Shown here: positions 6,672 through 36,425 of the stretch, piece by piece | How the letters are laid out: every line of letters starts with the position of its first letter | Position numbering within the stretch: the stretch's first letter is position 1 | NCBI RefSeq assembly: GCF_037042905.1 | Contig: NC_087252.1 | Coordinates: forward strand, 7,006,001 to 7,070,000 | Reading direction: 5' to 3' | Length of the DNA: 64,000 bases | Origin: Lytechinus pictus | Lineage: Eukaryota | Made by a program: the position numbers and the translations under genes | Notes under the pieces: model-generated | What the model was told of the DNA's origin: nothing | The model's input: the letters and a program-made list of their open reading frames with translations, nothing else | The model's database searches: none

Positions 6672-6902
6672 TTAATAGATGTGAACATCAAAATTAAATT
6701 CCACTTTCCGGTGTCAGTCAATGGCCAGCCGCGCGGGATACCGTGTTGTCGAAAACTACTTATGATGTCAGGCAGAACACATTATACAGGACTAACTACT
6801 GTAAATTATCTTCAAACATTTGGAGTTTTTTCTTGACATTATAAAATTGAATGGAATTTGATAAGTAGGCCTAATTCACAACATGCTTTGCATTTTACTC
6901 AC

Positions 6903-7856
6903 CTTCCACCACAAAGTCCATACTACCATCAGTGCCCTGAATTTCACATCTATAGATCCCATCATCTGTTACTTCTGCACTAGAAATTGTCATCACTGAT
7001 TGTATATTTGTCAGGGTAGTTACATCAAAGTTTTTGAACTTTTCATCATCAGTGATAGGGACTGTTCCAGCAAAGATATTTTCACCTGTATTGTCATCTA
7101 CCCATAAAATTACAGGTACTGTTCCACCTGTAATATCACATGTGAGTGTGGCATCAGTCCCAGCTGCTGCTAGTGAAGTACCGGTTACAGTTGCTGTTTG
7201 CCCATTTGTTCCTGGAATAAAGTGGGTGAGAAATAAACAAATTAATTAAGATTTTCTGGTACTTGTGGTAAAGTGCCAAAATCGTTTTAAAATACACAAT
7301 CCTCAGCCTCTCACAATGTATTGCTTAAAGCTTTGGTTGCCAAGTATTAACTTGACAACTCGAAAGTCTTTCCCTTGCAAACACTGACCTAACCAAGTAA
7401 TAAAATTGACCGTTGGTTAGATGCAATTGTTCTTAACATTCAAGATTCAAGAAGTTTATTTTCATTTCCATGACAAATCAAATACAGATACAAATCAAAG
7501 TATGAGTACCAGATCAATTTTACCTCAGCATAATTATATGATATATTCGAATTACCGAAACGATTTTTTTTCCCCCAGGTTATATTTCAAAGATTTATAT
7601 GCTAAAGATTATTGTTTAGGAGATAGAGCTGCCTAGCTAAAATCTGAAAATGTTGTGTCTCACAGACCAAATCACAGACATTTTGAACAAATCCCTCATT
7701 TTGATTAGTTGCTGATCAACGACTCAGATGTAAAAATGAAATCTCGTCCTTTCGATCACTCTTAATCAATTAACTAACTTCAAGATAATTACCAATTACA
7801 AGCAGCAGAACAGCAAATCCACGTAATAAAACCAGGCCAGCCATCGTCATGGTCAT
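6903..7856 (-). CDS. Copy B: 5' part of a paralogous Ig-receptor gene (signal exon 7793-7856, V-Ig exon 6903-7211); continues beyond the left edge
   Basis: MTMTMAGLVLLRGFAVLLLVI(G) plus an intact 309-nt exon ATLTCDITGGTVPVILW...DDGIYRCEI. Splice sites match copy A, and the introns are collinear with 32080-36360. Confidence 0.87.
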
Positions 7857-16579: not shown

Positions 16580-16639
16580 TCACATCTCCAGAGTAGAAGC
16601 ATACAACCCATCATCCAAGTCATTCAGAGACAAGTAACT
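16580..16639 (-). CDS. Copy A last coding exon, C-terminal tail
   Basis: TTTCACAG| SYLSLNDLDDGLYASTLEM*; conserved in copies C and D. Confidence 0.85.
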   Translation of the reverse strand, partial: SYLSLNDLDDGLYASTLEM

Positions 16640-19600
16640 CTGTGAAATAAGACAAAAATCGTTAAAATTTTAACGTCATCAAAAATTATATTTCAAACCA
16701 GTAATAACTTCAAATTTACTTCGATAATGACGGTACTTCACGGATTTAATTTATTTAGTTAGATATTTATTTATTTCCACAAAAACAATATATAATACAT
16801 GTTATAATGATCAATATGATATCAAATGCATGTCAAGAGAGATTCCTGTTAAAAGAAAAAAACTAGACTCCTTGTAATATAAATGGTACACATAAAAAAT
16901 CATACAAATTATTATACAACAAAAAACGAACAAAGAAGAGCCTTCTGTAAGATATCTGTACGACTTAAACTAGTTTTACGTGCACATCCCCAAACGACAT
17001 TCCAATAAGATAAATGTGTGTATATTCGTAAGTGAGCTCGTAATTAAAAATTTTTGGTTTTTCATATTCATGATAAATAATAATGGAAATAAGTGCAGAT
17101 GTTATTTTTTTATTCTATCTTACATATATATTGTTTTTTAATATATATTATATTATGGCATTAAAGAATTAATTGTATAATAAATCATGAATAAGATAAT
17201 ATGATAAAGAAAAGCGTAGTTGTAAAAGACACCAAGTAGTGTAAGAAAGACAAAATTGTTTTAATCTTACGTGTTTCTTTTCTAAAATCCTATCCATACT
17301 CTTCAGGATGTGATCAAAGTTACTCCGATTTTGGGGTTCCTTGTCCCAGCAACCAGTCATAACCACATACCTTTGAAATAAATTAAAGATGATGTTTATA
17401 TAGAAATATGTATATATTACATAAATGGTTAAGGAAGTATATATAAAATTGATTTAAAACATGGAATTATTAGAGGGGTAGGCCTATACACTACAGGCTG
17501 AAAATTTTATGATCTAAACAGACAGGGCTAATTCATACAAAGAAAACACTGGAAATTCCTTCAAAATCGTACAATAACAAAGGTATAATATCTTAAAGTT
17601 TTGCACTATTTTTTGGTGAAATAGTTGTACGTATGTCCACTCGAGCATACAATGATAAAGCTGATTCTATCTTCCCTTTTGTAGTATATATGAACTAAGA
17701 TTTTTTTCACATTTTGTCCGCCTAAAATAAAAAAAATTAAAATGATTGATAAGGAATGTAATCTGTGAGATATTTATTGCTGTATTTTTTTTTTTTAAAG
17801 GAAGACATATCGTATACACATAACAACAAAAATATGAAATAATTATTATTTCATGCAATTACTGAAGAAAAAAATGGGACAAAACATCATCGGCCCACAT
17901 TTTTGACGGCGTACATGTAGCTGTTTTCATTTAAAAAAATCCAATAATCTCGACATTTGTCAGATCTTGATGAAATAGGCCTTTTGCTAATAAAATGATT
18001 TTTACTATACTTTAGATGAAAATTATTTTCAACCCGGAGTACCCCTTTAGTATAGATCATTCAACTCATGTTCCCCTAGGATTGTGCGTAAAATCTATGA
18101 AGATTGATTTTTGTTAATCTTTGTTGTGAATTTGCAACATATACGGTAAATGAAATTTACGAGAGCAAACAACAAGAGAAATTCTCTATAGGTCAATCTA
18201 CAATCCTAGTAATCCTTGTCAAGCAAGTTTTAGATTTTTTTGATAGAAAATAAGTATTACACTTCTTGTGCACAGTGACGAGGACATGGCATCTGGTAAC
18301 CATTAGCAACCTCCGTCCGAACCGTGCTGAATGTCATATTTGGGTAGGGCCTTGCACCTATCAGAATGTAAAAGCAAAAATTATATTATGAAGCATCTGA
18401 ATATCATATATCTAGAAGTTGACCAAAATAAATATATATTGTTAGAAGTAGAAGTATGAACATGATGTCAAATATTGATTCCTTATAATGAATATCTCGA
18501 CACCGATAAATATATGTGCATAATTATGTGCCCAACTGAAAAAAAGGCATAAATTACAAGTTTTTTTTTGGTCCGTTTATCACAGCTACAATTACTGTGT
18601 CTAATGTTATACAGTATATTATTAATCTGACTGTCAGTCACAGGTTTAACCATACCTAACCTAAATAACTTTATTTGTAACAATCATCAATCCCTTTTAA
18701 AATGTTCAACATCACCCGGCGTTTTATATATCATTATAATGTTGATATCATTATCTTTCGAGCCGAGTAAGGATATCTTTTAAAATGTTGTTTTGATATT
18801 TCCGTCACTGTTCTTGTTGTTGTTGTTGTAGCAGCAGTAGTCATGGTAGTAAAAGTAACGATGTTGCTTTTGTTGTATTTTGCCTTTTATCATAATCATT
18901 TACCATTCTATCATCGATAATTGGTAGAAATTATCATAATCACCACAATCATTAAACCCATCGTTGTTATTTATTGATATATGACTAACATATTATTGCA
19001 TATTAGACATTTACACACAAAACTTCGTGCACATCCTTTCTTACCCAGTGTCACAATTTCCCACAAGACGATACCAAAAGACCATATGTCTCCTTCTGTT
19101 GTTTGGTCACCCGTTGCCATGGTTTCTGGTGAACTCCATCTGGATGGTTTCTATATATGACGGTGTGCAGATGACAAATAATCTTGCTATAACAATAATT
19201 CAAGCGATTGGTAATTATAATATGCAGTTAACCTATAAAATGTCAAAGATGTCTTAATACTGGCCGAAACAAGCAATAATAAAGTGGTATGGTTGCAGGC
19301 TGAGGATCAAAGTCAAGGGTCATGTGAGTTAGGGTTCCAGCCTCGCTTCATTTAGAATCATATATTTTCATTTACATTATCAAGTTATCAAATAGGAGAT
19401 TAATCTCTATGACAAGCCTACACCATAAACATTCATTATTGTAAGGCATAACGAGTCACACTTACAGCTACGTCACCAAGGAGCGATGAAGAAAGTCCGT
19501 AATCTGATATCTTGCATTGCTTTCTTTCTCCTAGCAACACATTGTGAGCGCAGAGAGCCCCGTGGATGATCTGAAGAAAAGAGAAATACACTTGCAACTC

Positions 19601-22600
19601 TGTATAGTGTTTAGTGTATTCATATACATGTATTTTGATCTCTGTGAAAGTCGACAAATTTCCCGTCTTACATCTGTGTTAAAAAAAGGAACGATAAACC
19701 CTTCCTATTCCTATTGTACTATTAGTAATACCTGTAATGTTTCCAAACAAAAATAATTTAGGTTTCTGGAAAGTATTGCTGCCGAAGGTATTTATGAGGA
19801 TATGGTTGTGCAGAGTTGCAACCCTAATTACGAAAACGATTTCTTATCTTGGACCGGTCAAGTTTTCATGTCTGACTAAAAGGGTCCCTTTCAGCTTAAA
19901 AACCGATTTTTATTTCCAAACCCAACTGCCTTCCTTTCTCCTCTTATAACCCTTTTTTGTTAAGGAATCTCATAAAAAATACCTTCTTAGATGCAAGGAA
20001 CTGCATCCCTTTAGCAGCCTGCCAAGCCAAGTTAAGTAGGGTACCCTCATCAATACGAACACCGTTTGGTTTGAGATTGCTGTACGTAGGTTGAGATTGC
20101 ACCCCTGAAGTATGTAGATGGGTAAGGAGTGTACCCCCTGAGATGAACTCATACAGAATACTACCTGCATGCGTGAATACACATAAAAACTGTGGTGTTA
20201 ACCGGTGTACATAGAGGACCACATCAGTTATTTTACACCGGTGTTGAATCGGTGGTGGTGTCATTACAACACCTTTGGTTGTTACATTTACACGCTTTGG
20301 TGTTATTTTTAATCTTTAGGGTGTAATCTTAACACCTCGGGGTGTGGTCCTATATTAACACCAACTGGTGTCAGTTTTAACACCGCAGTTTTTACAGTGT
20401 AATAGATTGTAATAGAAAGGAAAACTCTGTGACGTCATGTTTAATAATTGCATCTTCTTCATTGTAATTTAGGATAAGTATCCTTGAATTATCAAATGGA
20501 ATGGATTGTTATTGTGTCTTCTCCTTTTGTTTTGGTGTAAGAACCCCCAATGAAGAACCCCCTGGATGAGGGAAAGGGGCCAACGAACTCTTTAGCGATT
20601 AAAACAAATATTGATATATTTTTGTGGTTTCCAAGAGAACCAATTATATTCCATATTACACAATTAAGATGGTTTACGTACCTTGTTCTTTACAATATCC
20701 TAGGCATTTTACAATATTTGGTTGATCCGATAGCTCGTAAAGTACCTTGATGGCTTGAAGAACTTGTAATGATTTTGTCACGCGATCTAAGATAGTGTAA
20801 AGTACATAATGATATAATGGTATGACCTTTCATTTTAATATTCCCCTTCCGGATTGTTCACCATTGACCAATTTCTGGACAAGCAGAGAATATACCCAAA
20901 AAATTATATTATTATTATTAAAAAATGGGGCATGTTTCCCCCCTTTCAGTAACCCTGAACCCCCCCCCCCCCCCCTCCTTCTTTGATCCCGGTGAAACTG
21001 AATTCAAGTGAAAGAGAAGCCTGTGGCGTCAAAACTATTTAATTATTTGCATTGGTTTCCAATCTGCTTGTTCAGAATGACATCCTAAAACGATATGGTA
21101 ATAGCATAAATAATGAAATTAAAATTTAATTGAGATGACAAATTAAGAATGACCTTCAAATTTGAACTTCTCTCATTGTTATTAATTATTGTTAACTTTA
21201 CGAGCTACAAACCATCACCTGGTATTTGCCTAATAGCAACGTCGAGATGGTTTTGTTTTGATTGAAGGTCTCCCTTCCATACCTCGCCGAAGTCACCCCG
21301 CCCAATCGAGCCGAGTCTGGTGAAGAATGTCACGTTTTCACGGGCAATGACGAAGGAGTGGGTAGTACCAAGTTTTAACGTTGTGTATGCTGCATTGTTT
21401 TAAAACATATACATTTTCGACTAAGTACATTTAAAATACATGTACTTAAAACACCTAATCCATTATGTCTGATCTTGTGAGATTTGTAGTAAGTGTCTTG
21501 GTCAATAATATATTTCCAGAGAATATAAAGTAACTATGGATTTGAGATTAAAAAATATTTTTTATTGTAGGAGGTGAACATTTTAATGAACATTATTGCA
21601 TATAATAAAATACTAAGTTACAAGTGGAAATAACAAAATCATCAATTAACCCACTGAATATTCATGAAGAAATGCAAAAAAATAATTTATAGTGATATAA
21701 TACAAATCTTTAGAATGTCATAACATTTTTTCCCCTTTATAAAATTTGTAATGCTTTGTTTGATTTTCCTTTATCTATTGGAATAATATTATTTTCCGCC
21801 TGGAGTACCCGTTTAATAGTAGTGGTATACATCTTATAAAGAGTTCCCTCGCACCACTTAGAATAAAGATAAGGTAAACACCTGCTGACGCTTAAATATA
21901 TTTTCACTTATCCTTTTTTGTACTTTTGGCCTATATGCCATAGAGACCTAATTGTGAATTATCAGGATGATAAAGATATAATACGAATGACGTTCTTTTT
22001 TTTTTAACAGAACATTAAATCAAAGTAGTTGTACGAATGCATAATGTTTAATAGAAAAAAAAAGTTGACAATAAAATACACGTTTATTTGAATAAATAAT
22101 ATTTAGATGGAGTTTAAGATTTAATGATACACAGCTAATATGCAGAATCAATAGATAAGTTAGAAAATTTAATTCTTGAGTAATTTCTCACCTCGATTCC
22201 CACTTTGAATCATCTCATAAGCCACGTTATCATTCACTTCCTGTGGTATATTTATTTCATTGCTGTAAAACATATATAAATTGATTAGAGTTTATTTCAT
22301 CTCATGAGAAATGATATTTTTTTTTGTTAACATCCACTTAAAGGCATTTCATGGCACACATATATCAGCAACAATTACAATGAGGGAAGTGTTATATTAT
22401 TCAATGAGTATTACTCATTATTAAAGCGTTCCTAAGAATGAGATTAAGAAAAAAAAGGCTCAAAAAACGCCTTTATTATTTGAAGGATCTGGGTTTTTCC
22501 CCTTTTGGAAATAAAATCAAATATATATCTGTTGAAATGAATTTATCCTTTGTCCTCCTATTTCCGTCAGTTAATGTGTATGTATCTCAGTAAAATTTAC

Positions 22601-25600
22601 GCGTGAACGTTTGAATTTACGTTAATACTAGCTTGTGTGTTGAGGCGAAGTGTGTATGGTTAGAAATGTGAGTGTGTTCCGTTCTTTTCAATGGTATAGG
22701 ATGTTGTAAAGTTTGGTATAAATATGTGTGGTTATTTAGTATGGGCTGTTACAGTATCGGGTTTGAGGGTGTGCGCGAGTGGATGAATGTGTGGTGAGTG
22801 AGTGCGAGGTTGTACGGGCGTATTCGTAAGGTGAGCTAGAAGAGTGTGTGCATGCACGGGATGCGAGTTGTGTGTCAGAGGACGGGAGTGTTAAAGAGGG
22901 AGTGATGTGTTCGAGTGTGAGAGAGCTGTGTGTGTATGATAGGGAGCAAATGTGAAAGTGCAGGCAGTGTCTGTAAAAGTGTGTGTATCTTTAAAGATAA
23001 GTGTGAGTGCGTGGGTGTGTGTGAGATTATCTGAGTAGGTGTATGGGTGAGTGTGCGTGTTTTTTTCATGTGGGGGAGAGAAAATGGTGTGCAAAATTTG
23101 TGGGTTTGGTTTAATGGAGATATGTACATATTATAGATTCATTGTAGTCATGTAAAATGTGAGCGTGGGTGTTGCCTTCTAGGGTGTGTGTGTATGTGTG
23201 TCCGACAAAATATTTTTCCTTCTACTTACCTCTTATTATTCTTTGAATCATGGAACTCTAGTTTAGTGGATAAATATATAAATATACACGTTTACATTAG
23301 AGTGATGAAGAAAAAAAATGTAGCCATATGTAAACTGAGATGGCAAAATAAATTCAAGAGAGCACTCGAGGTCAAGATGCTCAAGATTTTATATACCTTT
23401 GCTATCAATTTTCGGTTTTATATCCCCTTGATAAAACATTAACGTATCGATGATCATTTAATATCCCACCTACTTGAATTATGGTATAGTAATTCTAACA
23501 CGATCTTACTAAGCGGAAATATGCTCAGATCTAGTTAACAAACCTTCTTTAGATAAACGACAAGACACGATATGTGTAGTGAGGGAATAATAATGTTGCT
23601 TTAATGTGTATTTTTATGATCATCAGAAAAAATACATTCCAACTTTGCACCTTTACAAATATTAGACGAGGAACACCTTTGAAGTTGCACCTTTGAACAT
23701 GTTCCTCTTGTGTTGGAGTTATACTTTTTTAAATTGGTATGACTTTAGGTAACATGTCCATTGTTTTACCTCGTCTATGTAGTTAAGTTAAACAAGGGTT
23801 ATTACATTACATTACTTCTTCTTTTACATTCACATTTACTCTATGTGAATATAACTACTCAGTAATCACCTGGTTTGGTTTTTCCCCTAAGAAGAATGAA
23901 CTGAACAATGTTGACGATGATAGAAGCTACTAAGAGGATGGCTAAAATAGCTATTCCAGCAGATGCTCCAGAACTCAAAGGACATGGTGTAGGCTCGGGT
24001 GTAGTCTCTGGTTGGTGAGAGAGTTTTATATCAGATGTTAATATAGATTGTGGAATTTAATTCATATGAATTAATTCGTAAACCTGTAAAATCCGATTGA
24101 TCATAGATTATAGTTCAACCATAATCATAGATTACACTACAAACATACAGCAAGAGGTAGAAGGTCCATGCTGCAACCCAGTTTTCGGGACGACATTCTA
24201 TAATAAAACCCGTGCAGTATGTCAGCCATCTATGGTCTCATTTCTAAATCTAATTATATGTCCATAATTATTTTCAATCTTCAAATTTGCCGCAAAACAT
24301 ATCACAAAATAGTAAAATAAATCACTGTCCTAAACTGAATTTCCTTTAAAAGACAAGAAGAAAAACGTCTGGGCCCGGATTCACAAGGAGGAATGACTAA
24401 GTTCTATAGAGCTATAATAACTTAGGGCTGAGCTAAATTCTAGGGGGTTAGAATTTGTATTTCACGAAGAAGGGTAAGGTTAACCCAATAGTTAAAATAG
24501 TAGTCAATTAAATATAATCAAATATAATAATACATGGGTTTACAACTCATCAGTTGCATAAGTAGTCGACAACTGTTAGGATGCACCATATACGGGTAAT
24601 GGGCTACATTTTTATTTTACAAAGTTTCAAAGTGGCGAAGATGAAAGTCTAATTTTGAAGAATGTGATATCATATCTACAATAATTTCCTACTAAATCTG
24701 CATCTCTCCCACTTGGGTTTTGCGCCACCCCCATTATTACATATATTTCACAGTATTTTATTCATTCATTGTTCATGTTCAAACATTAAATGAATGTGTT
24801 TGTGCTGGTGATGTGGTGTACTAAAGAGGTGCCTCGGCCTTTTGTCGGTATGTTTGAGGAAGAGTGTCTTTGAAGATATTCCTTTTAACGAAAAAGTATT
24901 TCACTAACTTATGGCAGGTATGATTGGTATGATAGACCTGCAGTATAATGACTTACTGAAACCATTTATGATAAATATAAATGAAATTATAATGATGATA
25001 ACATTAAAAATGATAATAGAGATAGCATTTATAATTATTGTTATAATACGAACAATAGAAATAATGATCACAATGATAATAACGGTGATAATAAAAATAA
25101 CATTAAATGATAATAAAACTAACAATGATCAGAATAATAATTATAATAATGACAATAGTATCATATAATGTAAATACCATTAATAATAATTGGTATTTCG
25201 TAGCACCATCAACCTAGAAATATTCTATTCGGCTGCGCACTGTTTTTTTTTTTGTCATTGTAAGATGGAAAAGGGACTTCCTAAAAAATATCCACCACCG
25301 AAAGAGGAACCTTGTAAATAAAATTTTGAAAGAAATGAATTTACACTTCGTCTGGAGCCCAGGAAAACAATAGTAAACGGACTTTGGACCCTATTATATC
25401 TTGAATACCAAAGCGAATTCGCATGATGTGTGCAAATAAATATCATATTGACATTGATCCTTCCATATACACTGCCATGCACAGTTTATCTATAGAGAAA
25501 TGTGAGATTCTGTTACGGATACAAGTTTAAACCTGAATTTGAGGCATTTTCAAGCATTAAGTTTCGTGCAGAATTGCATGTCGATTAATGTTTTCATTCT

Positions 25601-28600: not shown

Positions 28601-31600
28601 CTTTGTTGACCCAATAAAACAAATAAATACAAAAATAGATATAAATAAAGTTGAAAAATATAACCCTGGTTTACATCAGTAATTACATTTCCAATGTAGT
28701 GTCTAAAACAAAGCATAATACACCATAGTGTTTTACGGTGATTAACTGACGACGTTATCATGATTATGATACATAGTCAATGGCATATTGTACACGTTTC
28801 TTTCACCTCAATCCCAAATAAAGACATGGCTTCTCCTTGATACCATTTTGAAGTTCATGTGTATAATATCAATTGAGTAATTATTTTGAGGAGGTGAAAA
28901 AGAGGATATGACCATCTGCACAATGTAATTTGAACTGAATGATGATTCTACGCACTGTTTGAAGACATTGAAATTTGTGAGATACTTCCTATTTTTGTGC
29001 AAGCGCCGTGAGCGTCTAGTTGTGGCGGATACCGGCGCTATTTTAATACAAGAACTCATCATCATCATCTATAACAACAAATAAAATGTTGCTTATAATT
29101 CACAATTTCGCGCAAATTTGTTATAAAAGGATTAAAGTAGGCCTACATACCAGTTGTCGGGGAAGGATTGGTGGTTCCTGATATTGAAAACAACAATAAT
29201 GTATTTAAAAAAAAATAAAGAGTTATAATTAGAATAATAATTTTTACATGAAAAAAAAAATAAATCTCCATCGTCTCCCAGTGAATGTAAGATATTTGAC
29301 AAGAAATTAGCACACCTCACAACCTTTCTGTATGCCGCCATCGGGTCTTTGTGGTTACATTGCTCACTGAGTTTGGGGAAGGTGTGAAATGGTTTGTAGA
29401 AAACCACAATCAAAATTTCCATGTTGATATTTGAAATGGCAATTTCTCATTTTTATTAGAAAATAGATAACAAATGGAAAAAATGGGATAGGGTTAATTT
29501 GATTGCTCTTTCTTCGCATTGTATATATGTACTAGCTTTCAAACAAAATGAGCCTCATGAATGCTTGTTATTGTCATCATTTTGTTTATCTCTTTTGTCT
29601 CTTTTGTATTTTTTTGGGGGGGGGCGAGGGGTCTATACAAAGGCAATTTCATCTACATACATGACATACACATACAAGTCACTTATACACTTTAATGCAC
29701 AGCCAAAAACACAAGCGTGACCCACCCCCGCAAACCCTCACACACACTCATGTGCGCGCACACATCCTTGAACTAAAGGCTGGTTTCTGGATATATAAAA
29801 CAATCGGCAACAAATTACATCCTGCATCTCCTGACCGACAGAAGGAAGGGGCTTCGGGGCTATAAGAAAATATGAAACCTGCGGGGTCACAAGAAGAAAA
29901 TCCTTAAAGGACAAGTCCACCCCAAGAATAAGTTGATTTGAATAAAAAGATAAAAATCCAACAAGCATAGCACTGAAAATTTCATCAAAATCAGATGTAA
30001 AATAAGAAAGTTATGACATTTCAAAGTTTCGCTTAATTTCACAAAACAGTAATATGCACATCCTGGCTGGTATGCAAATGTAGGAACTGATGACATCACT
30101 CACTCACTATTTCTTTTGTATTTTATTTTATGAAATATGAAATATTCTAATTTTCTCCTCATTGTCAAGTGATACAACGATTGATTCCTCCCTGAACATG
30201 TGGAATTAGCATTGTTTAATACTATATGGTTTAGTCAAGTTGGTCCTTATTGTCAAATCTATATACAAAATGAAAAATTGTATAATTCAAACAATAACAA
30301 AACAAAAGAAATAGTGAGTGATGGACATCATCGACTGACTCACATAGTTGTGCATATCACTGTTTTGTGAAAAATAAGCGAAACTTTACAAATGTCATAA
30401 CTTTCTTATTTTACATCCGATTTTGATGAAATTTTCAGCACTATCCTAGATTGATTTTTCTTTATTTTTCAGGTCAACATTTTCCTGGGGTGGACTTGAC
30501 CTTTAACAAGAACAAGCTTATCACATGGAAAGGTTGATATCGTGAGCTTTATAAAAGCGACAACAAAGACAGATTTTTAGGGTAATGACAAGAATAAGAA
30601 TTTTGAAGGTATATTTTCTTACTTATTGGGTCATATGTAACTGCTGCACTAAGTGATGTATTTCCAAGGTAATTACCAGCCATACACGTGTACGTTATTC
30701 CAACTTCAGGATTTGAAGTAGTGATATCATTCACACTATTAATTGATTCATGTATCAGGGTACCATTAGAGAATATATAGTAGTTTCTCATTATTGGAGT
30801 AGGTTCATTATGTGCGGTACATGTTACTCTGATGTCTGTTCTATCGGTTATATAATCAACAGTGACAGTAGTACCAGCAGTAGATGGAGAGGCTATAGGT
30901 TGGAAAAGAAAAACAATCACAATGAAATAATAAATAACAGAAAGCTGCCTTCCAATTAATATATCATTGTATGATACCAACTCTCAATTAAATCAGGAGA
31001 AATTCCAATACACGATCAAATAGGTTACCATATTGTTTAAAGTGGCATCCATTCCATAAAAAGTAGTTAAAGAGGAAAGAAAAAAAATCAGACGAGTAGA
31101 TAGTTGAACGTTTGGAGAAATGACGAACAATAAGGACGTTATGGGTTTTTAAAAGATTGGTTATCACTGTCCCCATGGATACTACGAATTGGCCGCAGTT
31201 GTGATTTCATATTTATATAAGGCAATGGCAACTTTCCATTCACTCCAATAAATGAAATTACTTTTTCTTTCAAAAGTTTTACTTCACATTATAATTTATT
31301 TTAAGGACATAACACAATATGCAACCTTTAATTCAGTATGACTACTGCCCCAGGTTGCATGTAAACGACTTTAAAAATTACTCTTCCTACTTACTATGAA
31401 TGTCTAAATCTCTTGATTCCTGACTTTCGAGCTCTGTAAGCTGATATCCAGTAGCGCGACATTCCAAAGTCTGTAAATGATTTTCTTGAGTTGCTGGGAA
31501 AGTGAACGTACTCATTGTATTAGATAATGGTGGATTAGATGGTGTTGGTGGGTGTGTTTGCACTATCGTCTTGCCATTGCCATTAGTCTGTTCAACACCA

Positions 31601-34600
31601 TTCAGATACCATGTGATGTTAACTTGTGGTTTGCTTCCAACAACTTCACATGTTGCTTCATACATATCCTCTTCACTGCTACTTACAAAACTTCTTACAG
31701 TTGGTCCAGTTAAAGTTCCTGGAGCTAAAATCAGAGAAAAATATTTACAAGTGACGATTTAGTAATACCCATTACTTTGGTTTATACCAACTTTTATATG
31801 GGACCCTGCAGAAAACAAGTGGAATACTAGTCTTAAAAATAACTAAATAATTATAGGAATAAAGAAAATTTTGACAGAATTAAAAGGTGATTTGTCGATT
31901 TTGAAAGACCACCGAATTATGATTTCATGTAAAATTAAGAAATGGGAAAATGGGGTCATAATATTATCAACAGCATCACATGTTGCTTCATACATATCCT
32001 CATGATTTACCAAGGTACTTATCAGTCAATGTCACACTTGGTGCAGCTAGAGAAAGAATAATGCAGGTTAATCCATTTACCATACATGATAATATCACTT
32101 ACCCTTTAGCTTATGTTTAGGAAAGGCCTCTAAATCTAAATCGTAGGTCCTAACTGAAATCAATAAAAATTACATTCGCATGAACTCACTTCGTAGCTTA
32201 TTTTTCAGTTTGCATGACTGGTATCAGATTAAATTTCTTCCTCTCTTTTTATAATTTCCTTTTCTTCTCTCTCTTTTTATACTCTCCCTCTTGCTCCCTC
32301 CCTTGATGTAAATAGCTACTGTAGATCCAGCGCAATTTTCAATTGTCTCTTATTTCATGTGTGTGTATTTATGCTGAGGTAGTATGAACTACCGATAAAA
32401 AAACATAGAATTTAAAAACTTAGAAATTTCGTCAAAATCGGACAAGGAATAACAAATGTATTAAATTTATAATTTCCCTATTTCGTCAACGTTCTATACA
32501 TGTCTTCATGAATATTCAAGGAGCAAACTGATGATGTCATATCCGCACCTGTTTTTTTTCTTTTACATGAAATTATGTTTTTCAAAGTTTGTCCTACGAT
32601 AACTAAAATTGATTTAGTGCATTAATTAGATATTCATCGCTGCAAATTATTTTATCATAAGGGATACATATCATATACACTCGTATCGAAATATGGAATA
32701 ATATACGATTATTTGTAATAAAATTAGAAAAAGGAAAGTGTGAATGTGACAAGGGTGACGAGACGTCCCGTACTTTAAGGGGCATTCTTTCATATCACAT
32801 ATTGTCCAGTGTCCCGTACGACGATGCCCGTGACGCCGTTTTGTCTCGTATTTCATGATTTTGAACACATTCAAGAGAGAATATTCTTGCATTTTACTTT
32901 GTTCTCTAAAGGGAAACTCACGATAAACAGATTTGTAAATCTTTTATGTATTATTTTTTTGAAAATTTCCGTGATACCTACTAAGTAGAGAAAGACTATG
33001 TAATCAGCAATAGATATGAACGAAGAGTGTGCGTTCATGCTCATATTATAGCCTTTCAAAAATGTGTATTCAATAATGGCCTTCATTCTAATTGGATTAG
33101 TGGCATAATGAACCGAACATGTAGAGGGACCACAACATAACTTAAGTGGGAAAATTCGGGCCTTTTTTGAAGGGCAATCTAATTTTGTGATATATCCAGA
33201 ATCATGTATATATTTCACCCCTTTCCCTTCCCTGTTTCCCCTTATGTTATTCATTTATTTATTTATTATTAATTTGTTCGTTTTCTTTGTATTGGATTCC
33301 CCCTCCCCTTCTGGGAGCACAAAATTCTCCCCATGTATACACCGGCAATTTCGATTTATTAAGTTGTGATATGATGGCATATTCAGCATCATCAACTTTT
33401 GCTTTTAAGAAAATAGCTAGGAAATATGGGAACACCTGTCTATCATTTTGAACATTTGTTTATATTTCTTTCCTTTTTTTCAGTACCAAATTTTGTACTG
33501 CCATATTTCATATTCCTAAAGTGGACTTAGCGAAACGAGCAAAACCAATGAGAGAAGGATTTTTTTTTGCAAATCCGAACAGAACAAAATTTGTATCCAA
33601 ATTTCAAAAGTCAAAATTTAATATTATGAACACGGAAACTCTCACGGAAAGGACAATACTAACAAACATTTATACACACATGCCTTATATTTTATATGAC
33701 CTGATTGCTTGTCTTTCCATACTCCTTTCCTATATTGTAATTCGGCAAAATTTAGACCAAAAGATGTGGTAGACAGGTAAATTGAAATTAAATCACATCT
33801 ATTCTCTTTGCGTTGTTTTTAAAGAAGCAGATAATGGATAAATTCATCAGAATTATTTGCGGTATCTCTGTAAATGAATCAAATCATGTGTCGATTACAG
33901 CATAAAACTAATCAACTACTCAACTCAAGACACCGGACATACTGAAACTTCCCGTCCTACACCAGTCCAAGTAAAATTAAATGAATGAACAGAGAGGTCC
34001 AACGGAACCATATTTTTTTCTCATTCCAAAAAAAAAAATCTTGAGAACATATTAATGAGGTTATTTTGTATAATTTAGAAATAGGGGCGACAGCCCGGCG
34101 AGGGAATTGGTATTTAATAATTAATAATTTACTATCGGACCAACTAATGTAGATAGTGAAGGGGCTTGGTGGATTCCGTATATTCTGAGGACTAGGGAGG
34201 AAATGGGAAAAGGAGAGAAAACTAAAGGAAAGGGTGAATTATATTATAGTTTTCTAAATTAAGGTGTCGAAATCTAGAACACAAAATTAGTTTTTTAATA
34301 AAATTTCATTGCAGTACCACTTCAATCATGTAAAGATATAACTTTGTTGCAGTACATTATATTGTTGACCACTTTATTATAAACATTGATCCTCCATGTT
34401 ATAACCTTGCTACTGTTACCACATATAGATATGAATATGGCATTGTCATTCCTCTGTCTTTGCATACTGCAAAATATTAATCCTATAAAGACTGTTATAA
34501 TATTGACTAAACACTTTATTATAATCATGCTACTGTAACCTTTATAATCTATTTGCATGTGTATGTATAAAAATTTCTTTATTTTTTAATACCAATGCAA

Positions 34601-36425
34601 AATACATCAATCATGTTAAGAGGTTTGTGCAGTTCTCACTCATTCAAATCACTTTGCTAGAACAATTTCATTGTTAAATTTACAGATATTATTTCATACT
34701 TACTAGCATTTTAAAATGCCAAATCATTTCAAATCATTTTCAATGTATTTGTTGTCTTTGTAACAATATGTTCACATGCAGACATGCAAGAGACGACTCT
34801 TTTTTACTTAAACTTGTACAGGCCCTTTCTATTCACACGAGTATTTTTAAAGTGTAATTCACAAGTAATTTCTTATCTGTTAATTCTTACTATAGCTCTA
34901 ATTTACTTTTCTCAATTGTCTTATTTCTCTTTCTTTCTTCACTTTTCTCCTTTTTTTCTCTTCTCATGCATTCTTTGATTCATGGATCTTATACATGATT
35001 TTATCTCGAGATCTAATCTATATCTTAATTTCAGTTGCTATTTTTTAATTTGTTTAATTTCCTCAATAAATTTGGTTATCAAATCGCTTAGGTTCTTAAT
35101 GTTGCTGATGTTCATTTGTATAAGGTTGTTGTGACAGTAGTTGAACATTATGTTGTTTTTTTTTCTTATGTCATCGTAAATTGAGTTTCCTTCAGTTGGT
35201 ATTTGGTCAGAATGTATGAAATATCGGAACCGAATATAGGCATGGGACTTATCATAAAATAAAAGGTTTACTCACTGTGTACTATATCAGACCCCTCCCC
35301 GCACAAACACTTACACAACACACACAGACACGCCCACCCTCACACACACACACACACACATACAAACAAATATGAATTCCTCGTTACGGGCCTGAAATGT
35401 GTTTGAATATATCCTTTTAAAATGTGGTTATTCACTACGTTTAATGCTGCATTAACTGCAAGGATTACAGTAAGAACAATTCCAAGCACTTAATAGCTTG
35501 TCCAGTTTCACACAAGATATGAACATCAAGTGTCATATAAAATTTGAACTCAAAACATGCTGTGCATTTTACTCACCTTCCACCACAAAGTCCAAACTGC
35601 CATCAGTACCCTGAATTTGACATATATAGACCCCATCATCTGTTACTTCTGCACTAGAAATTGTCATCACTGATTGTGTATTTGTCAGGGTAGTTACATC
35701 AAAGTTTCTGAACTTTTCATCATCAGTGATAGGGACTGTTCCAGCAAAGATACTTTCACCTGTACTATCATCTACCCATATAATTGCAGCTGCTGTTCCA
35801 CCTGTAATATCACATGTGAGTGTGACATCAGTCCCAGCTGCTGCAGGCGATAAACCGGTTACAGTTGCCGTTTGCCCATTGGTTCCTGGAATAAATCGGG
35901 TGAGAAGTAAACAAATTAATTAAGATTGTCTGGTATTTGTGGTAAAGTACCAAAATCGTTTTAGAAAACACAACATGTAGCCTCTCACAATGTATTGCTT
36001 TAAGGCTTTGGTTGCCAAATATTAACTTGTCAGCTCGAAAGTCTTTCCTAACTGACCTAACCAAGTAATAAAATTGACCGTTAGTTTAATGCAATTGTTC
36101 TTATAAATTCGAATTACTAAAAAGATTTTTTTTTTTCAGGTTATATTTTAAAGATTTATATGCCAAAGATTATTGTTTTAGGAGATAGGGCTGCCCAGCT
36201 AAAACTGAAAATGTTGAATATCACATTTGTAATCACAGACATTTTGAACTAATCTCTCATTTTGATTAGTGGCTGATCATTTAATCAACGACTCAGATAT
36301 AAGAATGAAATCACCTCATTTCGATTACTACTAATCTTTTAACTAATTTCAAGACAATTACCCATTACAAGCAGCAGAATAGCAATTCCACGTAATGAAT
36401 CCAGGCCAGCCATCGCCTTGGTCAT
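16580..36425 (-). CDS. Copy A: complete spliced gene for an Ig-domain receptor tyrosine pseudokinase (SP-IgV-Ig-Ig-stalk-TM-ITAM-like-pseudokinase), ~720-730 aa
   Basis: Hand-assembled exons, all GT-AG and phase-compatible, no internal stop: 36362-36425, 35577-35885, 31395-31724, 30623-30892, 29151-29177, (28165-28191), 23870-24007, 23230-23257, 22192-22262, 21219-21389, 20682-20786, 19983-20164, 19466-19570, 19045-19150, 18261-18357, 17271-17370, 16580-16639. Kinase motifs [46 protein letters not shown] and CW..EP..R..F. Confidence 0.88.
17271..17370 (-). CDS. Copy A kinase exon, subdomain XI
   Basis: YVVMTGCWDKEPQNRSNFDHILKSMDRILEKKH; GTAAGA donor. Confidence 0.92.
18261..18357 (-). CDS. 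Copy A kinase exon, subdomain X
   Basis: GARPYPNMTFSTVRTEVANGYQMPCPRHCAQEV, phase 1->2. Confidence 0.9.
19045..19150 (-). CDS. Copy A kinase exon, subdomains VIII-IX
   Basis: [35 protein letters not shown](G). Confidence 0.93.
19466..19570 (-). CDS. Copy A kinase exon, subdomains VIb-VII (degenerate catalytic loop)
   Basis: IIHGALCAHNVLLGERKQCKISDYGLSSSLLGDVA; TTCAG acceptor, GTAAGT donor. Confidence 0.92.
19983..20164 (-). CDS. Copy A kinase exon, subdomain V, kinase insert and VIa
   Basis: GSILYEFISGGTLLTHL...PTYSNL...LLNLAWQAAKGMQFLASKK; inside ORF 19944..20264. Confidence 0.92.
20180..20399. mobile_element. TA-flanked MITE with CAC...GTG ends and ACACC/GGTGT internal repeats
   Basis: CACATAAAAACTGTGGTGTTAA...TTAACACCGCAGTTTTTACAGTG; lies 15 nt from the start of exon 19983-20164. 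Confidence 0.75.
20682..20786 (-). CDS. Copy A kinase exon, subdomains III-IV
   Basis: DRVTKSLQVLQAIKVLYELSDQPNIVKCLGYCKEQ, matching the RTK HPNIV.LLG.C segment; 105 nt. Confidence 0.88.
21219..21389 (-). CDS. Copy A kinase exon, subdomains I-II
   Basis: AYTTLKLG...IARENVTF...[14 protein letters not shown]...LDVAIRQIP; 171 nt, phase 1-1. Confidence 0.9.
22192..22262 (-). CDS. Copy A juxtamembrane exon (SNEINIPQEVNDNVAYEMIQSGNR)
   Basis: TTTTACAG acceptor, G|GTGAGA donor, phase 2->1. Confidence 0.75.
22640..23200. repeat. Degenerate (GT)n-rich tract
   Basis: GT/GA-rich low complexity; explains the His/Thr-rich ORFs. Confidence 0.8.
23230..23257 (-). CDS. Copy A juxtamembrane microexon (EFHDSKNNK)
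   Basis: CTAG acceptor, AG|GTAAGT donor; its phase 1->2 is needed to put the next exon in frame. Confidence 0.7.
23870..24007 (-). CDS. Copy A transmembrane exon
   Basis: ETTPEPTPCPLSSGASAGIAILAILLVASIIVNIVQFILLRGKTKP: hydrophobic helix followed by basic stop-transfer residues; 138 nt, phase 1-1. Confidence 0.88.
24960..25190. repeat. Degenerate (AAT)n microsatellite
   Basis: ATA/ATG/AAC triplet run; explains the Ile-rich ORFs at 24904 and 24911. Confidence 0.85.
28165..28191 (-). CDS. Copy A candidate second 27-nt stalk microexon (DDQTSNPTE)
   Basis: ATAG acceptor with weak pyrimidine tract, G|GTATGT donor; same length and phase as 29151-29177. Confidence 0.45.
28219..28660 (+). repeat. 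Local tandem duplication, 2 x ~215-230 bp
   Basis: agttcgatcaaagaaaa...taaagttgaaaaatataa occurs at 28220 and again at 28431. Confidence 0.85.
28925..29070 (+). mobile_element. 3' tip of the same LINE family as 49948-51300
   Basis: ttgaactgaatgatgat...gcaagcgcc..gagcg...ggataccggcgcta...(CAT)n. Confidence 0.85.
29151..29177 (-). CDS. Copy A 27-nt stalk microexon (RTTNPSPTT)
   Basis: Pyrimidine-rich tract, TCAG acceptor, G|GTATGT donor, phase 1-1, Thr/Pro-rich. Confidence 0.7.
29908..30502. mobile_element. Full-length TTAA-flanked MITE (Kolobok-like)
   Basis: TTAA-AGGACAAGTCCACCCCA...TGGGGTGGACTTGACCT-TTAA with ~200-bp imperfect inverted arms. Confidence 0.9.
30623..30892 (-). CDS. Copy A exon, third Ig domain (I/C2-like, no core Trp)
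   Basis: 270 nt, phase 1-1. IRVTCTAHNEPTP...YYIFSNG...TYTCMAGNYLG; inside ORF 30549..30980. Confidence 0.88.
31395..31724 (-). CDS. Copy A exon, second Ig domain (C2-like, nectin/nephrin type)
   Basis: 330 nt, phase 1-1. ATCEVVGSKPQVNITWYLNG...STFTFPATQENHLQTLECRA; overlaps ORF 31387..31665. Confidence 0.9.
31965..32046 (-). pseudogene. Relic of a duplicated Ig2-type exon start
   Basis: TTCTTTCTCTAG acceptor, then AAPSVTLTD / frameshift / TLVNHEDMYEATCDAVD. GAGGATATGTATGAAGCAACATGTGA is identical to the live exon near 31647-31672. Confidence 0.65.
35577..35885 (-). CDS. Copy A exon, V-type Ig domain
   Basis: 309 nt, phase 1-1, CCAG|...|GTGAGT. VTLTCDITGGTAAAIIW...MTISSAEVTDDGVYICQ carries the Ig Cys, Trp and D-x-G-x-Y-x-C motif. 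Confidence 0.9.
36362..36425 (-). CDS. Copy A coding exon 1, signal peptide
   Basis: MTKAMAGLDSLRGIAILLLVM(G), phase-1 donor GTAATT; second in-frame ATG at 36413; conserved in copy B. Confidence 0.8.

Follow-up and report, generated by a model that had tools for sequence, protein, structure and literature searches.

In the sea urchin Lytechinus pictus, a receptor gene on the minus strand of contig NC_087252.1 (assembly GCF_037042905.1) encodes two tyrosine modules, YEMI and YTTL, which lie in separate exons and are brought together by splicing in the cytoplasmic juxtamembrane segment of the protein. The stretch of DNA analysed here (the window) comprises 64,000 nucleotides, positions 7,006,001 to 7,070,000 of the contig, and coordinates are counted from its first letter. 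Comparison with paralogues and homologues indicates that this tyrosine pair is a real, selected feature of the receptor. We favour, with modest confidence, the interpretation that the receptor is a pseudokinase of the scaffold type and the pair its phosphotyrosine docking module.

The start codon of the window gene is at 36425, and its last coding exon is 16639-16583. Its protein consists, in order, of a signal peptide, three immunoglobulin (Ig)-type domains, a stalk, one transmembrane helix, a juxtamembrane segment of ~65 residues and a tyrosine-kinase-like domain, behind which comes a short tail. The corresponding NCBI protein, XP_063959544 (P0016 hereafter), is named "fibroblast growth factor receptor 2-like isoform X2" of Lytechinus pictus and matches the window exons in tblastn with 96-100% identity, five of the nine pieces being at 100%. 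The two exons that carry the tyrosines (exons A and B) fell below the listing threshold of this mapping, being too short or low-scoring; the juxtamembrane sequence of P0016 is identical to that of the spliced exon model. Four RefSeq isoforms have this one juxtamembrane sequence in common, and their differences are confined to the ectodomain. The pair is made up of the following features.

22192 to 22262, minus strand: exon A, 71 nucleotides with AG and GT borders, encoding (S)NEINIPQEVNDNVAYEMIQSGNR
22208 to 22219, minus strand: first tyrosine module YEMI (TAT GAG ATG ATT), Tyr410 of P0016, within N-D-N-x-A-Y-E-M-I
21390 to 22191, minus strand: intron of 802 nucleotides separating the tyrosine modules, with GT..AG ends, skipped by a spliced contig
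21219 to 21389, minus strand: exon B, 171 nucleotides with AG and GT borders and a PF07714 match, encoding (A)YTTL.. and the start of the kinase-like domain (glycine loop GRGDFGEV, VAIR)
21376 to 21387, minus strand: second tyrosine module YTTL (TAC ACA ACG TTA), Tyr420 of P0016

A sequence-only reading of the window had placed both modules and translated them, and its coordinates and reading, taken on the minus strand, proved exact. It had also proposed that 22192 is spliced to 21389. One spliced contig from a small RNA run (X1) joins these positions directly and skips 802 bases, with CT..AC ends on the plus strand, a depth of 36 and 37 letters on the shorter side; within the intron, coverage by this run is essentially nil. 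The junction is in phase 1 and splits the alanine codon directly before the second tyrosine. Because the contig joins the exons directly and the RefSeq isoforms agree, an intervening exon between the two tyrosines is excluded. Further contigs of the same run join 23870 to 23257, 21219 to 20786, 20682 to 20164, 19983 to 19570 and 19466 to 19150. Three deep L. pictus RNA-seq runs (X5-X7), of which ~6% of the reads were sampled, gave zero reads on the exons of the window gene, and the junction is therefore neither confirmed nor refuted by them. Since no exon reads were found at this sampling, expression of the gene is probably restricted by tissue or stage. The sole coverage from runs X5-X7 lies on an intronic repeat at 20168-20515, which attracts many RNA reads and very deep contigs. 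These contigs run into unrelated sequence on both sides, and for this reason the element is a dispersed transcribed repeat and not part of the window gene.

The spliced product (..NDNVA-YEMI-QSGNRA-YTTL..) had been recognised as fitting the immunoreceptor tyrosine-based activation motif (ITAM), a fit that was upheld: residues 410-423 of P0016 (YEMI-QSGNRA-YTTL), on the cytoplasmic side of the transmembrane helix, match Yxx[L/I]-x(6-8)-Yxx[L/I] in the form Yxx[IL]-x6-Yxx[IL]; counted from the first tyrosine, N stands at -3 and D at -4. The classical motif is narrower, being defined as D/E/N-x-x-Y-x-x-L/I-(x)7-Y-x-x-L/I with an exon boundary inside the first tyrosine module (PMC4536121). The N at -3 agrees with this form, but the spacer is 6 in the window gene, 9 in Diadema and 5 in a paralogue on contig 17, and never 7. 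The urchin motif is likewise split over two exons, but the border falls directly before the second tyrosine and leaves the first module wholly in exon A. Because of the spacer and the position of this border, the tyrosine pair is not homologous to the vertebrate ITAM. Under the definition used for the Hydractinia Alr receptors, with a spacer of 6-9 (PMC9546547), the camarodont and Diadema forms qualify and the contig-17 form does not. The bare pattern is also common, being present in 2.6% of shuffles of the window gene's cytoplasmic domain and occurring 0.55 times per 1000 residues in the six-frame translation of the window. Taken as a pattern only, the pair is no more than expected by chance; its conservation exceeds chance.

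Evidence for this conservation comes in the first place from the paralogues. Across the 811 Mb genome, exon B is present in eight copies arrayed in tandem at 6.67-7.03 Mb of contig 8, and once on contig 17. The exact DNA block AAY GAN AAY NNN NNN TAY GAR ATG RTN, which specifies an NDNxAYEMI-type sequence, occurs seven times genome-wide, always within the contig-8 cluster, where seven of the eight genes keep it. Between distant L. pictus paralogues the last 41 nucleotides of exon A (NDNVAYEMIQSGxR) are 88-95% identical, the first 30 nucleotides 67-83% and the flanking intron 62-74%. Since the motif-bearing half is conserved to this degree, whereas the other half is conserved no better than the flanking intron, the comparison indicates purifying selection on the motif-bearing half of exon A.

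The same picture extends to other sea urchins. Homologues that share the catalytic-residue losses of the window gene (see below) were found in Strongylocentrotus purpuratus, Lytechinus variegatus, Diadema antillarum and D. setosum. A 56-residue exon-B query returned 11 representatives, and a second homologue search added no further urchin genera, so that the urchins covered are camarodonts and Diadema. Within the databases searched, members of the receptor family come from sea urchins only. Eighteen intact sequences (12 camarodont, 6 Diadema) were aligned, anchored on the ENVTFF strand of the kinase domain. The first tyrosine (Y1) is kept in all 18, and N(-31), N(-29), A(-27), Y(-26) and the following E, M and I are each kept in 16-18, amid poor conservation of the membrane-proximal juxtamembrane residues. 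The second tyrosine (Y2) is kept in 17 of the 18, at two different offsets: at -16 in 11 of the 12 camarodont sequences, the twelfth (P0023) having Phe, and at -13, three residues nearer the kinase domain with the total length unchanged, in all six from Diadema. The spacer consequently measures 6 residues in camarodonts but 9 in Diadema, with Y2 falling in a different alignment column in each. In the contig-17 paralogue and its L. variegatus orthologue (TYETI-DSGAA-YTAL) the spacer is 5, and a Sushi-domain relative from S. purpuratus (P0009) has the second module only, with Y1 missing. Starfish and amphioxus relatives that have the VAIK lysine carry juxtamembrane tyrosines in aligned columns, with spacers of 6 to 16. 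The sequence-only reading had named tyrosines or spacing not conserved in homologues as grounds for its refutation. This condition applies in part: the tyrosines recur in paralogues and in other urchin genera, apart from the losses in P0023 and P0009, and the spacing differs by lineage.

These data bear on the alternative that two independently useful or neutral tyrosines stand at an ITAM-like distance by coincidence and have no joint function. The frequency of the pattern in shuffled domains and the differences in spacing between lineages are what such a coincidence would produce. An invariant Y1 under purifying selection and a Y2 kept in 11/12 camarodont and 6/6 Diadema sequences are not, and we give this alternative very little credence.

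Conservation around Y1 reaches positions that an ITAM does not need, namely N-5, D/E-4, N-3, E+1 and M+2. The conserved E+1, M+2 and N-D-N prefix exceed the needs of an ITAM and of an immunoreceptor tyrosine-based inhibitory motif (ITIM) alike, and their retention suggests that a specific protein reads the first tyrosine. As leads to its identity, the sequence pY-E-x-I suits SH2 domains of the Src or Fes type, and N-x-x-Y recalls the PTB sites found in the juxtamembrane segments of receptor kinases. Residue -2 of Y1, on the other hand, is not constant and can be V, T, S, M, P, E or N. This position matters for the possibility that the site is inhibitory, of the ITIM type or that of the immunoreceptor tyrosine-based switch motif (ITSM), such that a phosphorylated [V/T/S]-x-Y-E-M-I would recruit an SHP2-like phosphatase and the receptors would be inhibitory. 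VAYEMI in Lytechinus, noted earlier as ITIM-like, does match the pattern [I/L/V/S/T]xYxx[I/V/L], as do TAYEMI in Strongylocentrotus and SAYEMI in Diadema, and V, T or S is present in most homologues; a gene for an SH2-SH2-phosphatase is also present on contig 14. In four intact homologues, however, -2 is occupied by M, P, E or N, so that the position is apparently not selected, and a Tyr-to-Tyr distance of 10 residues would be too short for simultaneous binding by both SH2 domains of SHP-2. An inhibitory site is accordingly highly unlikely in our estimation.

The receptor in which the pair resides should itself be catalytically inactive. Its kinase-like domain, recognised by PF07714 matches on four exon pieces (Ig-domain matches fall on three), has an intact glycine loop, but VAIK, HRDLAARN and DFG are replaced by VAIR, HGALCAHN and DYG, respectively. 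Loss of catalysis is predicted because the VAIK lysine, the HRD aspartate and DFG are all replaced, and the earlier suggestion that intrinsic kinase activity is dispensable agrees with these losses. The closest solved structures are those of Tie2, Ret, FGFR and Kit. With a tyrosine-kinase fold, a transmembrane helix and an ectodomain on the one hand and catalytic loss on the other, the protein classes on both counts as a receptor-tyrosine-kinase-derived pseudokinase.

A structural model of residues 376-726 was computed with AlphaFold2 from an alignment of 41 sequences. It shows a confident kinase fold, and its residues 1-52, which hold both tyrosines, have a predicted local distance difference test score (pLDDT) below 50. 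Both tyrosines are thus predicted to lie in a disordered segment, which fits an exposed linear docking motif and lends no support to a packed role. The model thereby weighs on the proposal that the tyrosines act without being phosphorylated, either as YxxPhi endocytic sorting signals, read by adaptor complexes, or as part of a stretch packed against the pseudokinase domain or a partner. Both modules do fit Yxx(hydrophobic), and the conserved non-tyrosine flanks would suit a fixed peptide-protein contact. Sorting signals, however, need neither an invariant E+1 and M+2 nor an N-D-N prefix, and residues 1-52 are modelled without confident packing on the kinase-like domain. We regard such a role as improbable.

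On the interpretation that we favour, an echinoid-specific Ig-domain receptor would descend from a receptor tyrosine kinase resembling Tie, Ret or FGFR and would have lost catalysis. Ligand-driven clustering would lead another kinase, perhaps one of the Src family or an active partner receptor, to phosphorylate Tyr410 and, probably, Tyr420 as well. SH2 or PTB proteins would then be recruited to the phosphorylated sites, and the receptor would signal as a scaffold in the manner of ErbB3. Tyr410, in the NDNxAYEMI block, would be the main, sequence-specific site; the downstream YxxL would be auxiliary, at no fixed distance. In support stand the conserved Y1 block, the predicted disorder of the segment, the replaced catalytic residues, the similarity to Tie2, Ret, FGFR and Kit, the aligned juxtamembrane tyrosines of starfish and amphioxus relatives, and the tail tyrosines described below. 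Several points count against this interpretation. Phosphorylation and the binding partners are deduced rather than observed, and evidence of expression is thin, with spliced contigs in the one small run X1 and no exon reads in the ~6% of X5-X7 that was sampled. Conservation of E+1, M+2 and the N-D-N prefix would fit a non-phosphorylated peptide interaction as well. Finally, the strict match to the ITAM pattern, together with a second YxxL kept at another offset in Diadema, argues that the pair as such is selected, which favours an ITAM.

The alternative that this last point favours is a working ITAM, in which Src-family kinases would phosphorylate both tyrosines and a tandem-SH2 kinase of the Syk or Shark type would bind the doubly phosphorylated motif and supply the absent kinase activity. 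Such an ITAM would have arisen independently of the vertebrate motif, within the juxtamembrane part of a receptor tyrosine kinase whose catalysis was later lost. Several observations speak for it: the N at -3 matches the D/E/N-x-x-Y prefix of the classical form (PMC4536121), the Diadema members fall within the 6-9 spacer definition (PMC9546547), the second YxxL is kept in camarodonts and Diadema despite its shift in position, the segment is predicted to be disordered in a catalytically dead receptor, and the genes form a tandem array of Ig receptors.

Candidate readers are also present. The L. pictus genome was searched with SH2, tyrosine-phosphatase and tyrosine-kinase profiles, and loci were built from exon-level matches. 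On contig 11 (G000:C11:2018395-2046730, minus strand), two SH2 matches are followed by a kinase exon on the same strand, with ZAP-70 and Syk as best solved matches; contig 16 (G000:C16:2408632-2449605, plus strand) holds a second SH2-SH2-kinase candidate; and the SH2-SH2-phosphatase gene on contig 14 (G000:C14:28332621-28359624, minus strand) is SHP2-like. Transcripts of Syk and HTK16 have been reported for a sea star (PMC11593052). The Syk- and SHP2-like proteins that a tandem-SH2 hypothesis needs are, by their predicted domain content, encoded in the genome, a result that is necessary for the hypothesis and does not discriminate. Two other loci were set aside. One, on contig 17, was dropped as a tandem-SH2 or Syk candidate, its kinase exon being closest to Abl, Src and Btk and the locus probably having one SH2 domain; the other (L023) has a weak kinase-profile match and found no counterpart among solved structures.

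What speaks against a working ITAM is the variation in spacer (6, 9 or 5 by lineage, versus 7 in classical ITAMs), the Phe at Y2 in P0023 and the missing Y1 in the Sushi-type P0009, the exon boundary before the second module, the conservation that extends well past Y and L/I, and the frequency of the bare pattern by chance. Both the motif as a functioning ITAM and its independent origin within a receptor kinase are, in our judgement, unlikely.

Outside the juxtamembrane segment, the tail (SYLSLNDLDDGLYASTLEM) contains a second tyrosine pair, YLSL-x7-YAST, which falls one residue short of an ITAM; S. purpuratus keeps it, and Diadema does so more loosely. The first tail tyrosine (Y334 in the alignment) is at least 90% conserved over the 41 aligned relatives, starfish and mollusc kinases included, and the tail tyrosines align with those of the Tie2 tail. 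The remainder of the gene is laid out as follows.

30624 to 36425, minus strand: exons for the signal peptide and three Ig domains (Pfam Ig matches, P0016 mapping)
23870 to 24007, minus strand: exon for the end of the stalk and the transmembrane helix (..GASAGIAILAILLVASIIVNIVQFILLRGKTKP); 3' end from the X1 junction, 5' end inferred from an AG and P0016 mapping
23230 to 23257, minus strand: micro-exon of 28 nucleotides (..EFHDSKNNK..) in the interval between the transmembrane exon and exon A (X1 contig junction 23870 to 23257, GT donor at 23229)
17271 to 20786, minus strand: remaining kinase-like exons, which encode HGALCAHN and DYG (X1 junctions, translation, PF07714 on pieces, P0016 mapping), in pieces at 20786-20682, 20164-19983, 19570-19466, 19150-19043, one near 18360-18263, and 17369-17271
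16583 to 16639, minus strand: last coding exon, C-terminal tail (P0016 mapping)

The 28-nucleotide micro-exon, absent from the sequence-only reading, lies upstream of both tyrosines and keeps the frame, in agreement with the P0016 sequence. In the ectodomain stalk, an alternative exon of 27 nucleotides (TTNPSPTTG, ~29146-29200, minus strand) separates RefSeq isoforms X1 and X3 from X2 and X4. A V-type Ig exon at 6898-7245 on the minus strand, a close match to 35572-35919, belongs to the next paralogue downstream, the remainder of which is outside the window.

Some paralogues and database models depart from this layout. For two paralogues the 8 kb upstream of exon B contained no exon A; a genome-wide pattern search placed one of the missing exons at 10.6 kb upstream. 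In the other paralogue, L007 (G000:C8:6820770-6820937; also L013), TG replaces the acceptor AG of exon B, and pattern searches within 8 kb upstream and genome-wide did not find its NDNVAYEMI exon. Because of these two losses, this member of the contig-8 array is probably a pseudogene. The automatic database models P0014, P0020, P0021 and P0024-P0028 begin with a Met that lies inside the YEMI block or directly behind it (MAYEMI.., MIQSG..), or else run from an Ig exon straight into exon B. They are probably truncated or mis-joined predictions, and the apparent count of members without the first tyrosine is therefore inflated.

Sea urchins possess very large repertoires of innate immune genes, and signalling by their Ig-type receptors is poorly known. 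A literature search on sea urchin ITAM/Syk, pseudokinases and ITIM found no description of this receptor family or motif. A clustered family of Ig receptors that keeps a kinase fold without catalysis, together with a conserved tyrosine block, provides a testable handle on receptor output. Should the pair be an ITAM, this would show that ITAM-type signalling is able to evolve inside a receptor kinase; expanded and clustered urchin Ig receptors would signal via kinases of the Syk or Shark type, and the family would represent a natural intermediate between receptor-kinase and immunoreceptor signalling. If it is not, the family would join the pseudokinase receptors that serve as phosphotyrosine scaffolds.

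Among known systems, the classical vertebrate ITAM proteins (CD3, FcR-gamma, DAP12 and CD79) resemble the urchin receptor in having a pair of Yxx[L/I] modules, some ten residues from each other, in a disordered cytoplasmic segment of a single-pass protein, with N at -3 of the first tyrosine and a motif split over two exons. They differ in the spacer, which is 7 in the classical form but 6 in the window gene and not constant across the urchin family, and in the position of the exon border (PMC4536121). Moreover, the urchin motif adjoins a kinase-like domain in the ligand-binding chain itself, and not in a short separate signalling subunit. A charged transmembrane residue is not evident in the urchin helix as read, with no dedicated search made.

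The receptor tyrosine kinases Tie, Ret, FGFR and Kit are the most similar in their kinase domain, and likewise have tyrosines in the interval between membrane and kinase and in the C-terminal tail; a counterpart of the NDNxAYEMI block was not identified in solved kinases. ErbB3 is a catalytically impaired receptor that depends on another kinase, and it is to this scaffold type that we liken the urchin receptor. Unlike any of these, the urchin family combines three Ig domains with a tandem array of at least eight genes and a distribution limited to urchins in the databases searched.

Invertebrate membrane receptors with ITAM-like pairs are also represented by the Draper/CED-1 type, which in Drosophila works with Shark, and by Hydractinia Alr (PMC9546547). 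The latter is a clustered, expanded family of Ig receptors for which ITAMs and ITIMs have been inferred from sequence, with Syk and Shark homologues in the genome (PMC9546547). In contrast to the urchin family, the Draper/CED-1 and Alr receptors are without a kinase-like domain, and a sequence relationship is absent. The spacer of the Draper ITAM is also longer than that of the urchin pair.

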